From assembly GCA_038496445.1 (NCBI GenBank), contig JALMLS010000344.1, forward strand, positions 372,001-436,000: 64,000 nucleotides of DNA. The letters are read 5' to 3'. Of the stretch, positions 23,581-32,555 are shown piece after piece. The stretch comes from Trichosphaerium sp. ATCC 40318. Its lineage: Eukaryota; Protista; Tubulinea. Each line of letters opens with the position of its first letter. Positions within the stretch are counted from its first letter, which is position 1. The position numbers and the translations under genes were made by a program. The notes below the pieces were generated by a model. That model did not search any database, was not told where the DNA came from, and saw only the letters and a list, made by a program, of their open reading frames with translations.

Positions 23581-24300
23581 GTTACCCTTCTCAAGATCAG
23601 TACAAAGTACATTCTGTTCTTACATTTTCCTTGCTGGTTAGTCCGTTGTACATCATGAGGTGCTCAAGCATATTGGAGATCAAGGGCAGCGGCATGAAGT
23701 GCTACGATATGGATTTCCGTCATGCTTCGCCGAAGACCCTTGCTTTAGTCACATCTATTTTAAAGGCAATTCCACTTACGTTAGCTTCTCGTTTGATTCA
23801 ATGAGTGAGCAACATTGTTCATAAGATAAAGTGGAAAGTCAGGCGCTTGCATTGTTGCAAGATAGTTCTTATTGTGAGCATTATAGCCAATGTTTATCAA
23901 GGACAGGTGTTGTGGTAAAACGTGGGTCTTCGTGGATAGCGCAACAGTGGGAAGTGTGGTTGGTCAATGTGATGTGATAGAAAAAACTACTTATTGCCTG
24001 CGTACTGCGACCTGTATCTTCATTGTTCAGCACAAGTACGAAAGAAGTCTTTTGTGGAAGCTGGAAATGTCAACACCTTGCACTGTACCTTACTGGACTA
24101 AACAATTGAAAGTGGTATTCAAGACTTGCACCCTAAAATCTGAAATAGTGAAGTGCTACACTCTAGCGATAGCGGTCAGACATCATCTCCGTCAATTTTA
24201 CTCCAACACTTGCTTACGTGTCACTCGCCATTCAACAAATTTGAGACCAATCACAGTATGTTCTAAATGCTATGGAAGCACCTATAAACGAATCAAATAA
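23581..24300 (+). CDS. Hypothetical spliced protein, divergent from AQR (start not resolved)
   Basis: Plausible exons join to SVVHHEVLKHIGDQGQRHEVLRYGFPSCFAEDPCFSHIYFK-DKVESQALALLQDSSYCEHYSQCLSRTG...WIAQQWE-HKYERSLLW...CSKCYGSTYKRIK*. No family recognised. Confidence 0.35.
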
Positions 24301-24584
24301 GGCTATTCATGAACGTGTGTGAAATGTGACATTAAGGGTTTTTCTTAGCTAACATGTAGCACTTCGCTATTAAAAACTGAGCTCCCAATACTCCGCAACG
24401 TAGTGGAGTGTTACCAAAATCCTACACAGGTAGTGGTGTATATTGGTAACGTACACTTCATGAGAAAGTATGCACTCCACAAGAAAATATGGATACATTT
24501 TTGAAAATTGCGAATTTTCGGTTTTGGCAAATATTCGTTCTGAATAACAAGAAAGCGCTTCACTGCAACACCTCAACAACTATT

Positions 24585-26393
24585 ATGTCCTCAAAACAAA
24601 GAAAAAACAACTCCAACAACAAGGATTATGTAATCAAGGTAAACTAAACACAAGGCGGTTTATTTTAAGGTTATTACGTACTAAGACCATCTAGATCCCT
24701 CCATTCCACTACTTGCATCTTTTAAACACAAACAAGAACGTCACTCGCGTTGTAACTGGTCCACAAACGCTAACATGCTTGGAGGATGAACAAGGTACCC
24801 TACACGTCATTTACACTTAAAAAAAGGCGTCTGAGTACAGTTCACGCCTGTTTTCAAAGCTTTTTCAAGTAATTGTGTCTTTGACGTTGACAAGTTTTTT
24901 GCAGTCGTTCACGGGCCTGCGCACATGGTGGTAGTGCCACCACGCCATTATGTCATTGTAGACAATCCAGTAGTAACTACTGGAGACAAAGATGATAGCG
25001 GCCAACCAAAGGTATAGTGTATTTACACGCGTGTTACAAGTGTTAAAGTTTAAAAGGTCGTTATGGACACTTATGGTTCAGCAAAACTGAGGCATGGTGA
25101 CTCAGAAGTGCGCCTATCTGGTCAGCCGTTTCCTTTGTACCCAGGAGAAAAAATTTCAGGTTCTGTAAAGCCGTTAGTTATCGTAGCCGAAAACACAGCT
25201 CTACGCCTTCATGTGCGTATTTGTATAAGGTTTCTATTTCTAGAAGTTAACATCTGCCTAGGCATTGCGTACATTCGAGGATATTTACGCCCCAGACGGT
25301 CCCGAGTTACGCCAAGCTGGTACTGCGACTATATAACCTCAATACACGCTAAACGTACTCTCTAGGAGAGGTATGGCTCTTTTATGGTCCAGCCACGTAT
25401 ATCCCTCAAGTCCAAGTCGAGATGCTTCAAACCGTAAAAGCTGTTATATTGAGACCCCTACAAGGTGCATTTTAAACTTTTACAATAAACCAAAGTAATA
25501 TATTGACACTTTCAAGCCCTACAACTTCGTGCACGTGATGATTGTACTGATTGGAAGAATAAAGAAAGAAAGGCTGGTGAACAATGGCTAGTACAAACTA
25601 TTGGTGCCTACCTCCCACAAGCTAATGAAGAAATTGTAAAAACCATAACAGCCAAAGTATTGACACACAGTAAAGCGTACGAATTTATTATTTGTCTACA
25701 TCAACACTAATGGAGCTCAGAATTCACGTGCGCGCTGAGCGAACTTATACTGATAAAAACGGTATTGAGAGGAAGGCTGGTACAGAGTGGCTTGTGACTT
25801 CAGAAGACGCAACTACTTATATCCCAAGTGTTAATGAGGTACTAACCAAAAGCAAAGTAGTGCTTAAGCTGACTTTTGTTTGAAGACTATAACAAGAGAG
25901 ATAAACGCAACTACTATTCGCCAAAACCAATATGTTGTTATCAATGATCCAGTAGGAGAAGACGGTAAACCACAACTTGGTATGCGCAAGCTAGTCAGAG
26001 GACCTCGCAATTTGTTCTTGCAGCCAGGTGAAAGGCTTGAGGGCGGACACGTTAAAGCTATGTTTGTTCTGGATGCCGACACGTACGTTTATATTTATCA
26101 TAGTGCTTAAAGAATCTTTTTAACTTTTTTAAAGTGCTCTATTTGTAAGAGCAAAAGAAGAATTTGTTGACAGATATGGAGGTGGTTCTGTTAAAAGAAG
26201 ACCTGGTAATCGTTGGTATGTCTACGGACCAGGTGAATATTGCCCACCACTTGAAGTAGACGTACTACCAAAGCGCGCACGCGCTTTTGTAAGTGTTGAT
26301 GGTCTTGGATTGCATCTGTTTCATCCTGGCCAGTACGCTGGTTTGTTTCTCCTGTTTGCTATACTCTACATTTTGTACATTCGATACATGTAA
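24585..26393 (+). CDS. Truncated major vault protein (MVP) homolog: repeats R1-R7 plus C-terminal hydrophobic tail (~440 aa, 10 exons)
   Basis: IPPFHYLHLLNTNKNVTRVVTGPQT, VVPPRHYVIVDNPV, LRHGDSEVRL...PFPLYPGE, AGEVWLFYGPATYIP, RKAGEQWLV, RKAGTEWLVT, DPVGEDGKPQLG...FLQPGERLE and RPGNRWYVYGPGEYCPP are collinear with MVP R1-R7. They are followed by YAGLFLLFAILYILYIRYM* (TAA 26391-26393). Confidence 0.9.
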
Positions 26394-26534
26394 GTAACAA
26401 ACTAATAAAAGTGCAGTTGTTAGTTACAACACAAACAAGGTACACCTCGTATCATTGCAAAATAATCTCTGTTTTTCAATCGTGTCACAAACTAGTTTAG
26501 AAGTGTCGTTAACGCGCGTGCATTGAAAAAAACA

Positions 26535-26630
26535 CTATTTATAAGCGTTTAACACGATGTGCTGTTTTTTAGAATATTTACCAGTCAGAATATGTACACG
26601 TGACACGTTGTTAAATGCTTAAATAAATAG
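26535..26630. repeat. Degenerate inverted repeat between two convergent 3' ends
   Basis: CTATTTATAAGCGTTTAACACGATGTG (26535-26561) resembles the reverse complement of CACGTTGTTAAATGCTTAAATAAATAG (26604-26630). Confidence 0.4.
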
Positions 26631-26930
26631 CTGCACGTGCAAGAAATAACGTGTATTTTAATACTAATTCTTGAAGTACGAAATACTAACTAACGGTCAA
26701 AAGACAAAAATGGATTACTTCAAGCCGATAAGATAAATAAAACTAAAATCTGCTTTTTTTCGAACTGATTGCCAGTTTACTATCTTACACTACCAAAAAA
26801 AAGAAAAAAGAAAGAGAGGGTAAGGTTCTGAAGCAGTTTGCTTGTGCTTTTCTTCTTTGTAATATGTACAATTGTCGTGTTGTTTGTTTCTCGTTAAAAA
26901 TGAACAAAAAGGGTCGTTAAATATCTCTCG

Positions 26931-27686
26931 TCACTCGATAAAGTTGTTTCTGTAGGCAACACGGGCGCCTAGCATAAATACGACAAATAGCCAAACAGCA
27001 ACTTGCAGCATTAGCAATTTGTTCACGTTTTTGTAGGCAGATTTTCCAGACGACGACATGGCGTGTTCGTAATATTGGTGCCAACAACCTGATACGCGTC
27101 TTTCTAGCTCGTATTTGTGTTTGATGTCATCTTCTGCAGATTGAAGTTCTGATATCTTCTGTTTGCTTTGCTGTAGCAGGGATTCAAGCGTAACTCTGAA
27201 ATTTTTTTCTTGCTCGCGCGTTTTCCTTTCCACGTCTAATTCTGTTTGCAAATCTCTGCACTTATTTCTGTGCGTCTCGTTATCTTCTAGGGCACGGCGC
27301 AATTTCTCTTTTAGTTCTGCCATTTGTTGAGTTAATTCGTGTACCAAATGCTTTGCGTCTCCGGGCTTTCGTGGAGAAGCCTGAAAACCGGCGCCATTTG
27401 TTTTTGGTTTTTCTTGAGGTATTGGGCTCGAGTGCTCAGTGTGGTCCTTAGGCGCTTTGTCTGGAGATTTTAAAGCTTCTCCGCCAGCTCCTTGCCCTTC
27501 TTCTGCTGGTGGAGCCTTTTTTTTCGGTGTGTACCTAAACGCAGCCTTCTTCTTGCCCAGGAGTGAACGCAGTGATCCAGAGCGTTTTCCGCCTCCTTGG
27601 GACGGATCTGCATCAGAACCTTCTAATAGAGAATTGGCGACCAATGAGCCTGTTCGCTTACCTAACCGCGCGTAACGGGACGCCAT
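26931..27686 (-). CDS. Intronless coiled-coil protein with C-terminal transmembrane (tail) anchor
   Basis: 251-aa ORF with a disordered N-terminus, a heptad-rich coiled coil (LTQQMAELKEKLRRALEDNE...) and a hydrophobic helix LLMLQVAVWLFVVFMLGA near the C-terminus. Confidence 0.75.
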   Translation of the reverse strand: MASRYARLGKRTGSLVANSLLEGSDADPSQGGGKRSGSLRSLLGKKKAAFRYTPKKKAPPAEEGQGAGGEALKSPDKAPKDHTEHSSPIPQEKPKTNGAGFQASPRKPGDAKHLVHELTQQMAELKEKLRRALEDNETHRNKCRDLQTELDVERKTREQEKNFRVTLESLLQQSKQKISELQSAEDDIKHKYELERRVSGCWHQYYEHAMSSSGKSAYKNVNKLLMLQVAVWLFVVFMLGARVAYRNNFIE

Positions 27687-28049
27687 CTCCTATGTTTATT
27701 GTTTGTCTAACGGCTTAATACTTTTTTTTTGCGTAAAGACTAAGTGATCTCCCTCCTTAATACAAACAGGCTCAGATTCTAGTGCGCTGCTACGCGAATA
27801 CCAGAATATTTAAGTACAGTAATTGTGCCAAGTCTGTTTTTGTTTTTTAGGCAAAATGCTTAAATGGGTGCAAACGCTACAATTGAACCTCTGAAGGATA
27901 TTCTAGCAATCCTCTCGCGATACGCGCACATTTGACAATAAAATAACGGCACGTGTAAATTGGAAAACAACAATAACGAAGTGCTCGTATTTTGAGTCGT
28001 GACGCCGATTCTCTCTGAGGTAGGCAAAATACGCAACAATAATTTACTT

Positions 28050-31522: not shown

Positions 31523-32555
31523 ATGGCCAATATACAAAGCGATGACACAAGCTCTCGTTTCCTTAAAACACTACCAGTAGAGCTTATTATTACAGTTTTT
31601 GAACACACCAATTAAAACACGATATCCTGTGGCTCAGACATGCTGGCTATTCCATGACATTATTCATAGATATGTCGGTTACGGTACAATCAATATTAGA
31701 TCAACGGAGTCCTTAAAGCGTTTAATCAACCATAAATTGCTGTTAAACAATACGTTCGTATCAATCGGGAACTGCAAAGCCACAGACCAGGAAATATGTT
31801 CATTGGTAGGTGCTAAAAAATTATCACTATGGAAATTGGAAGTGAGTGACAAGTGCCTTGAGGCACTTGCTGGTGTTGAGGAAATATATATATTAAAGTG
31901 CCCATGTATTACGAATGAAGGTGTACGATTATTGTCAGGTGTACATACGATAGATCTGAGCGATATGAAACAGCTGACAGACAAATCATTGGAAGCTTTT
32001 GCAGGTGCGCACACAGTAGATATTTCAGGCTGTACTCGTATCACTGATGAAGGATTACAATCACTTGCTGGCGTTCACCGGATAAATATAAGCTCTTGTA
32101 AAGTTACTGATGTTGGTGTTAAAGCACTTGCTGGAGCTCATACAATAGGAATGTCTTGGTGTGCCAATATTGATGGTTCTTGTTTTGAGCACTTGGTTAA
32201 AACAAAAACCAGGAAAGGTTTGCATACAATTAGCCTTGTTCAGACTCCAGTAACAGATAAAACTATCAAAGCACTTGCTGGAGTTCATACTATTTCCTTA
32301 GCTAGATGTGAAAATATCACAGATGAAGGTGTTATTCATCTTGCTGGTGTACACAAGATATCTTTAAATTTCTGTTTCAGGATAACAGATAGAGGCATTA
32401 AGGCTCTTGCAGGTGTTCATACAATCGATATAAAGGGTTGTTCTCTTGTAACAAATGAAGGGATAGCAGCTCTTAAAGGTGTTTTTAAAATTTGGATCTA
32501 TGGTACACAGTGCACACAGGCTGCTGTCGAAGCACTTATGGCACAACGTAGATGA
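31523..32555 (+). CDS. Intronless F-box + cysteine-containing LRR protein, frameshifted in the F-box (error or pseudogene)
   Basis: ATG 31523 reads ...LPVELIITVF then stops. The +1 frame (ORF 31599-32555) continues NTPIKTRYPVAQTCWLFHDII and carries about 9 repeats of LAGVHTIDISGCxxITDEGxxA. Confidence 0.75.

Follow-up and report, generated by a model that had tools for sequence, protein, structure and literature searches.

Few particles of eukaryotic cells are as large or as conserved as vaults, and their function is still unclear decades after their discovery. A stretch of 64,000 nucleotides (nt) from Trichosphaerium sp. ATCC 40318 (contig JALMLS010000344.1, positions 372,001 to 436,000; hereafter the window, in whose own coordinates all positions are given) raises the question of whether one half of a vault protein can be a protein in its own right, as it contains a gene encoding major vault protein (MVP) repeats R1-R7, followed by a hydrophobic tail in place of the remainder. 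An earlier note on this DNA had proposed an intact, domesticated, tail-anchored MVP paralogue devoid of the parts that close a vault, and this proposal is now supported by RNA contigs, sequence constraint, the existence of a family and a helix prediction. The gene is probably a short tail-anchored MVP paralogue belonging to a conserved amoebozoan family, whose membrane-anchored rods would dock half vaults or form a palisade. The identity as an MVP paralogue with an anchor is well supported, and the docking or palisade function is put forward as a hypothesis.

The gene model was obtained by three-frame translation and splice-site tracing, resulting in nine introns, all GT..AG and 44-110 nt in length, and a 435-codon product with no frameshift or internal stop, terminated by TAA at 26391-26393. 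The RNA evidence consists of assembled contigs from four public runs (X1-X4) of three studies, placed on 24300-27900. All of the modelled junctions (9/9) were present in spliced contigs, including the junction 24638/24695, which was confirmed by contigs of X2, X3 and X4. The ten exons, canonical splice sites, R1-R7 content and open frame described earlier were thus reproduced by the rebuilt model together with the RNA contigs. The features of the gene are given below; the junctions of exons 2 to 9 are all RNA-confirmed.

24547..26434, + strand: transcribed unit of the short MVP gene, from its 5' end to the most distal base with RNA-contig coverage
24585..24638, + strand: coding part of exon 1, with the start codon (first ATG of the transcript) and a Lys/Asn-rich N-terminal extension
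24695..24794, + strand: exon 2, R1 including waist-tip residues and Cys46
24905..25011, + strand: exon 3, R1/R2 (Vault_2, PF17794)
25057..25212, + strand: exon 4, R2 (Vault_2, PF17794, E 1.7e-13)
25262..25319, + strand: exon 5, start of R3
25366..25464, + strand: exon 6, R3 (Vault, by Pfam)
25517..25676, + strand: exon 7, R4 (Vault, PF01505, E 3.9e-11)
25721..25838, + strand: exon 8, R5 (Vault, PF01505, E 2.3e-12)
25886..26082, + strand: exon 9, R6 (Vault_2, by Pfam; MVP 272-326)
26135..26393, + strand: coding part of exon 10, with R7 (MVP 332-378), the family motif, the transmembrane segment and the stop codon at 26391-26393; continuous in RNA
26283..26327, + strand: post-R7 family motif AFVSVDGLGLHLFHP, residues 400-414 (consensus AFLxIEPLGLYxFxP)
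26289..26333, + strand: GTAAGT..CAG intron look-alike, in frame, 45 nt, unspliced, coding for part of the conserved motif
26334..26381, + strand: transmembrane tail anchor YAGLFLLFAILYILYI, predicted from hydrophobicity, residues 417-432; RYM and the stop come next
26404..26409, + strand: AATAAA poly(A) signal, 11 nt past the stop codon

Of eight exon translations scanned against Pfam, seven matched PF01505 (Vault) or PF17794 (Vault_2), with scores above the curated cut-off in five cases, and alignment with solved MVP chains assigned exon 9 to MVP residues 272-326 and exon 10 to residues 332-378, the latter being R7. When 22 full-length MVPs were compared with the 64-kb window by tblastn, 130 significant matches were obtained, all within 24677-26348 on the + strand. 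Nothing past MVP residue 408 was found anywhere in the window by this search, and neither R8-R9 (PF17795/PF17796) nor the SPFH-like shoulder (PF11978) nor the cap helix was present there, in agreement with the earlier statement that some 400 residues are missing. The convergent gene downstream was considered as a host of hidden MVP exons and rejected, being an unrelated, unspliced coiled-coil gene.

The 3' end of the gene was read from its transcripts. Exon 10 runs unbroken to 26434 in X1, to 26432 in X4 and to 26401 in X2, where adapter sequence follows, and this end at 26401-26434 lies right behind the stop codon. The contigs of X1 and X4 reach ends 23-30 nt downstream of AATAAA, and that of X4, ~1.4 kb in length, starts at 24547 immediately after the template-switch oligo sequence, so that it looks like a full-length cDNA. 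There was no RNA-contig coverage from 26435 to ~26770; the contigs stop just after the poly(A) signal, and no transcript into downstream shoulder or cap exons was seen. Two GTAAGT sequences, at 26289 and 26390, had been named as alternative donors whose use would still terminate the protein right after the hydrophobic helix. The first would pair with the CAG at 26331-26333 and keep the frame, removing 45 nt that code for conserved motif, whereas the second would append ~20 unrelated residues; neither was used as a donor in any contig of the four runs.

These transcripts bear on the reading that the locus is a truncated relic or an assembly artefact, in which the 5' half of a full-length MVP gene was joined to unrelated DNA and the hydrophobic tail arose by chance read-through. 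The protein does stop where R8 should begin, and the GTAAGT at that place resembles an ancestral intron donor. However, the last exon, the 3' untranslated region and the poly(A) signal are the same in RNA contigs from three studies, by which a local misassembly is ruled out, and the supposed read-through residues match a motif found in ~90 proteins from many amoebae. What the earlier note regarded as the beginning of an R8-like repeat is in fact this conserved motif and no remnant.

The family to which the motif belongs was uncovered by a whole-library search with exon 10, which returned 190 matches; many of the best were proteins of 380-470 amino acids (aa) aligned to their own C-terminus, with almost all of the query included. 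The tailed architecture is present in 90 of the 268 proteins examined (267 sampled proteins and the window protein), and consists of R1-R7, then the motif AFLxIEPLGLYxFxP, and finally a hydrophobic segment, in which the uncharged run has a median length of 17 residues. Members are roughly 400-480 aa long with a transmembrane segment of 16-22 residues, and their only Pfam domains are PF17794 and PF01505. The window protein can be aligned with the family end to end at a full-length identity of 45-57%, its best matches being P0151 (53% over 425 residues) and P0161 (57% over the R1-R7 columns), and the tail of P0161, like that of the window copy, stops directly after the membrane segment. Members were found in Tubulinea (Pyxidicula operculata, Amoeba proteus, Copromyxa protea, Flabellula baltica with two copies, and Nolandella sp.), in Discosea (Acanthamoeba castellanii, P0221; Balamuthia mandrillaris, P0174; Luapeleamoeba hula) and in Evosea (Cavostelium apophysatum). 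The gene is therefore one member of a family spanning Tubulinea, Discosea and Evosea, the three main amoebozoan groups, and no one-off truncation. The earlier description as an intact, tail-anchored MVP paralogue holds, but the gene is not unique, given ~90 sampled family members in Amoebozoa.

Database entries of 400-520 aa in these taxa are labelled 'major vault protein', and other records are labelled 'colicin uptake' protein. Full-text literature searches, whose coverage left out most subscription journals, yielded no description of a tail-anchored short MVP family, consistent with the earlier remark that no such system had been described, though its members are deposited as 'major vault protein'. 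Used as the query of a region-restricted word search, the P0272 tail gave only two candidate proteins. A profile search with the family alignment was dominated by full-length MVPs and added no new named taxa, as R1-R7 is so conserved that full-length MVPs swamp the search.

Besides the tailed proteins, a second short kind exists, in which the post-R7 motif is followed within ~10-20 residues by an aromatic FFFW-like peptide and basic residues without a full membrane segment. This set comprises P0010, P0032, P0034, P0056, P0194, P0211, P0236 (Thecamonas trahens), P0238 and P0012 (Pelomyxa schiedti), and its proteins are scattered at several places inside the short-form clade of the tree described below. 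In three transcriptomes, a single Trinity gene gave rise to both a full-length MVP (~844-883 aa) and an isoform of 342-477 aa, namely P0192/P0339 of Nematostelium gracile, P0267/P0279 of Squamamoeba japonica and P0372/P0280 of Clastostelium recurvatum; since one Trinity gene yields both lengths, some short database entries are alternative or partial isoforms, which lie outside the tail-anchored clade. Bacterial MVP homologues (P0201, P0208, P0214, P0217, P0338, P0341 and P0364), from cyanobacteria such as Moorena, an Anaerolineae bacterium and Candidatus Parabeggiatoa, are annotated as 'colicin uptake protein' or 'hypothetical protein' and reach scores as high as the eukaryotic ones against the short-family profile.

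The relation of the short forms to full-length MVPs was addressed with an unrooted tree of the R1-R7 columns from 85 sequences (37 tailed proteins, 8 short ones lacking a full membrane segment and 40 that extend to R8 or further), after rows more than 72% identical had been dropped and the columns of the tail left out. An IQ-TREE quick search (LG+C20 with posterior mean site frequencies) placed 43 of the 45 short forms, including the window protein, on one side of a branch with a Shimodaira-Hasegawa-like approximate likelihood ratio (SH-aLRT) support of 99, and all full-length MVPs on the opposite side. FastTree united 42 of the 45 with a support of 0.989. The short forms outside the split are long-branch rows. 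These topologies suggest that the short forms are one old paralogue group, for which no dated origin is claimed.

Constraint on the gene is apparent at two scales. Between the window and the X2 contig, which derives from a slightly different strain, all five coding differences (5/5) are synonymous, one of them lying in the motif region at codon 411, while the synonymous share of possible changes in this coding sequence, and hence the chance expectation for each, is 23%. Across families, 101 columns of R1-R7 reach a conservation of 75% or more among short and full-length proteins alike, and the residue is the same in 101/101; a further 45 columns are conserved in full-length MVPs only and 18 in the short family only. 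The possibility of a silent, neutrally evolving copy is contradicted by the transcription of the gene, by the synonymous strain differences and by homologues that are 45-57% identical. The same strain differences and the separate clade of the short forms also speak against a truncated relic or assembly artefact, which is exceedingly improbable.

The contigs of X2 and X3, which carry another organism label and come from another study, represent a slightly different allele or strain, with differences at 25135, 25418, 25915, 26044, 26318, 27123 and 27366. Five of the seven are those in the MVP coding sequence and two are in the neighbouring gene.

The fold of the repeats was judged from an AlphaFold2 model of the closest homologue, P0161, rather than of the window protein, based on a 72-sequence family alignment and with a mean predicted local distance difference test score (pLDDT) of 95. 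As far as residue 397 the modelled chain is entirely beta, and a single 21-residue helix follows at 400-420 with a block pLDDT of 89-97; the equivalent of the motif is modelled as short beta strands packed against R7. In Foldseek comparisons, the model matched the murine MVP R1-R7 crystals 3GNG/3GF5 with target-normalised template-modelling scores of 0.83-0.85 at 48% identity, and MVP chains of whole vaults with a root-mean-square deviation of 2.1-2.5 Å over ~380 columns. By way of this homologue, the window protein is predicted to keep the R1-R7 fold of solved MVP.

The C-terminus of the window protein reads KRARAFVSVDGLGLHLFHPGQ-YAGLFLLFAILYILYI-RYM, the order after R7 being AFVSVDGLGLHLFHP (400-414), GQ, YAGLFLLFAILYILYI (417-432), RYM and the stop. 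Its last 19 residues (417-435) form the sole strongly hydrophobic window and have the highest mean Kyte-Doolittle value of the protein, 1.76, whereas the N-terminus MSSKQRKNNSNNKD is hydrophilic. With a single segment at most ~30 residues from the C-terminus and no signal peptide, the protein has the features of a tail-anchored protein, and the transmembrane helix anticipated in the earlier note finds its counterpart in this hydrophobic tail and in the helix 400-420 of the P0161 model.

In many relatives, extensions of 10-25 residues follow the membrane segment and end in K-x-[DE]-L. Among the members with at least 10 residues past the segment, 36 of 48 end in [DE]L, usually with K at -4 (KQEL five times, KDEL and KKEL twice each, as well as KTDL, KSDL and KTEL), as opposed to 0 of 42 among those with fewer than 10. 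The occurrence of the [DE]L ending only with a spacer that reaches away from the bilayer argues strongly for a lumenal C-terminus of the long-tailed members and for their residence in the system of the endoplasmic reticulum (ER) and nuclear envelope, as predicted from these tails. A lumenal C-terminus fits a tail-anchored topology, in which the MVP rod would be cytosolic. Precedent for such an arrangement is given by yeast Sec20p, a tail-anchored protein with a lumenal HDEL. The window copy ends with RYM three residues past the segment, has no K-x-[DE]-L and thus represents the short-tailed subtype; its assignment to the ER is made by analogy with these relatives and from the usual default route of tail-anchored proteins, and is accordingly provisional.

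The same tails bear on a different reading of the hydrophobic helix, as a cytosolic oligomerisation element that bundles to nucleate a small soluble vault-like cage without any membrane anchor. The MVP cap helix drives assembly by helix-helix contacts, as described in PMC3595041, and the tail sits in its place on the rod; moreover, a few of the short forms, among them those of Thecamonas and Pelomyxa, have at their end only the short FFFW-plus-basic peptide. Yet the segment is uniformly hydrophobic rather than amphipathic over its 16-22 residues, and K-x-[DE]-L endings 10-25 residues beyond it make sense only in the ER lumen and are confined to members with long enough spacers. A soluble helix bundle is accordingly very unlikely, and the tail is preferably read as a membrane anchor.

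The residues by which vault halves meet are mostly retained in the short family. In the human vault, according to PMC13347060, the halves join via R1: F6, I7 and I36 make up a hydrophobic patch, N22, Q38 and N40 a polar triad, and D39 and R42 a salt bridge. Laterally, the chains hold together less strongly along the repeats than at the cap helix. The equivalents of human I7, R9, N22, D39, N40/H, E41 and R42/K show the same residue spectrum in short and full-length proteins. At the position of human R37, 33 of 40 tailed members have a Cys instead, corresponding to Cys46 (24776-24778) in the window protein, where it adjoins the residues joining the two vault halves; Cys is not among the five commonest residues of full-length MVPs at this column. 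Human Q38 is replaced by Leu or Lys, the window protein having Leu47. The constraint on the vault wall and on most of the waist tip thus equals that in MVPs that form vaults, while the self-assembly part is gone.

On this basis, a mechanism can be proposed for the membrane-anchored paralogue. The C-terminal helix would be inserted post-translationally, so that the rod of seven repeats stays cytosolic and its R1 tip faces away from the bilayer. As KDEL-type signals end three quarters of the relatives that have a lumenal extension, the target membrane would most likely be that of the ER or nuclear envelope. Most residues of the wall and of the R1-R1 waist are retained, but shoulder and cap helix are missing; the likeliest mode of action would therefore be that membrane anchoring takes over the concentrating role of the cap helix and orients the rods, which could then pack laterally or meet R1 tips head-on. 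The outcome would be either canonical half vaults docked on the membrane or a vault-wall-like palisade there. A more specific version, which is tentative and has a rather low probability, is that rings or rows of ER-anchored short MVP act as cap-less half-vault walls, the bilayer standing in for the cap, and dock canonical half vaults at their free R1 tips, giving hybrid vaults with a lumen open towards the ER or nuclear envelope, or that their R1 tips pair to bridge two membranes at a fixed spacing.

The R1 tip also enters into a further alternative, in which the protein is membrane-anchored but independent of vaults, and the R1-R7 rod serves on the cytosolic face of the ER as a spacer or as a platform that binds, for instance, a PARP-like partner or another one that recognises the repeats. 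Vault PARP binds the repeat region of MVP around R3-R4, which would suit such a platform, as would an R1 tip bearing the family-specific Cys46 and Leu47. However, identity in 101/101 shared conserved columns and 48% identity to mammalian MVP are more than a spacer needs, and at least one species, Cavostelium, has both short and full-length MVP, which fits a joint function without proving it. We consider a vault-independent platform unlikely and return to anchored rods that interact as vault walls, against which several points nevertheless weigh.

Lacking the [DE]L ending, the window copy has a less certain target membrane than its relatives, and its membrane segment is short, at 16 residues. 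Membrane insertion, location and partners are predictions for every member of the family. In crystals, R1-R7 fragments from mammalian MVP are reported to occur as isolated chains (3GF5/3GNG), so that lateral self-assembly without the cap helix is not guaranteed. Docking to canonical vaults could be changed or lost through the replacements of R37 by Cys and of Q38 by Leu or Lys, together with relaxed columns; the columns relaxed in the short family are the 45 that only full-length MVPs conserve. The branch support consists of SH-like values only, and the assembled contigs show presence while leaving room for rare longer isoforms.

Compared with canonical MVP (rat, human, and Dictyostelium MVP-alpha and MVP-beta), the window protein shares the R1-R7 order, the fold, with template-modelling scores of 0.81-0.84 for P0161, and most of the R1 waist residues, whereas it is devoid of R8-R9, the SPFH-like shoulder, the long cap helix behind 39-fold assembly and the cap ring, has the motif and the predicted transmembrane helix instead, carries the family-specific Cys at the R1 tip and falls with the short forms into a separate clade. 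The 'major vault protein' entries of amoebae have the same architecture, post-R7 motif and hydrophobic C-terminal segment, but many of them carry the K-x-[DE]-L extension that the window copy and P0161 lack. Tail-anchored ER proteins of the Sec20p type resemble the family in their single C-terminal segment and cytosolic N-terminal domain, and in the lumenal retrieval tetrapeptide of many family members, while their cytosolic domains are unrelated to MVP and the window copy has no retrieval signal.

Shortened protist relatives of MVP have been described before. The MVP-like proteins of Naegleria, of 530-559 aa, retain the shoulder with fewer repeats according to PMC3595041, in contrast to the present family, which has seven repeats and has lost shoulder and cap. 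A paper on trypanosome paralogues (PMC12547018) notes two full-length paralogues in Dictyostelium and puts truncations down to genome quality. Other literature on MVP covers its evolution (PMC3762200, PMC3595041), bacterial homologues (preprint 10.1101/872010) and human vault structure by cryo-electron microscopy (PMC13347060).

By exchanging the self-closing half for a predicted membrane anchor while keeping the wall repeats and the waist tip, the family offers a concrete, genetically tractable link between vault architecture and a membrane, as well as a natural experiment on a repeat wall without the cap helix. Its members occur in culturable amoebae such as Acanthamoeba castellanii. If membrane-docked hybrid vaults or membrane bridging proved true, the vaults of amoebae would have a definite place on a membrane and a function open to testing. 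For annotation, such genes should neither be called simply 'major vault protein' nor be discarded as fragments.

The convergent neighbour gene (coding sequence 26931-27686 on the - strand, transcript ~26771-27691) is unspliced and encodes a protein of 251 aa with a central coiled coil, for which no Pfam family was found at the cut-off. It has a C-terminal hydrophobic segment of its own, LLMLQVAVWLFVVFMLGARVAY, and because of this segment it looks tail-anchored too; the word depth of its RNA contigs is far above that of the MVP gene. Further downstream, an open reading frame at 31599-32555 on the + strand encodes 318 aa with LRR_6-type leucine-rich repeats (Pfam E 3.6e-16).

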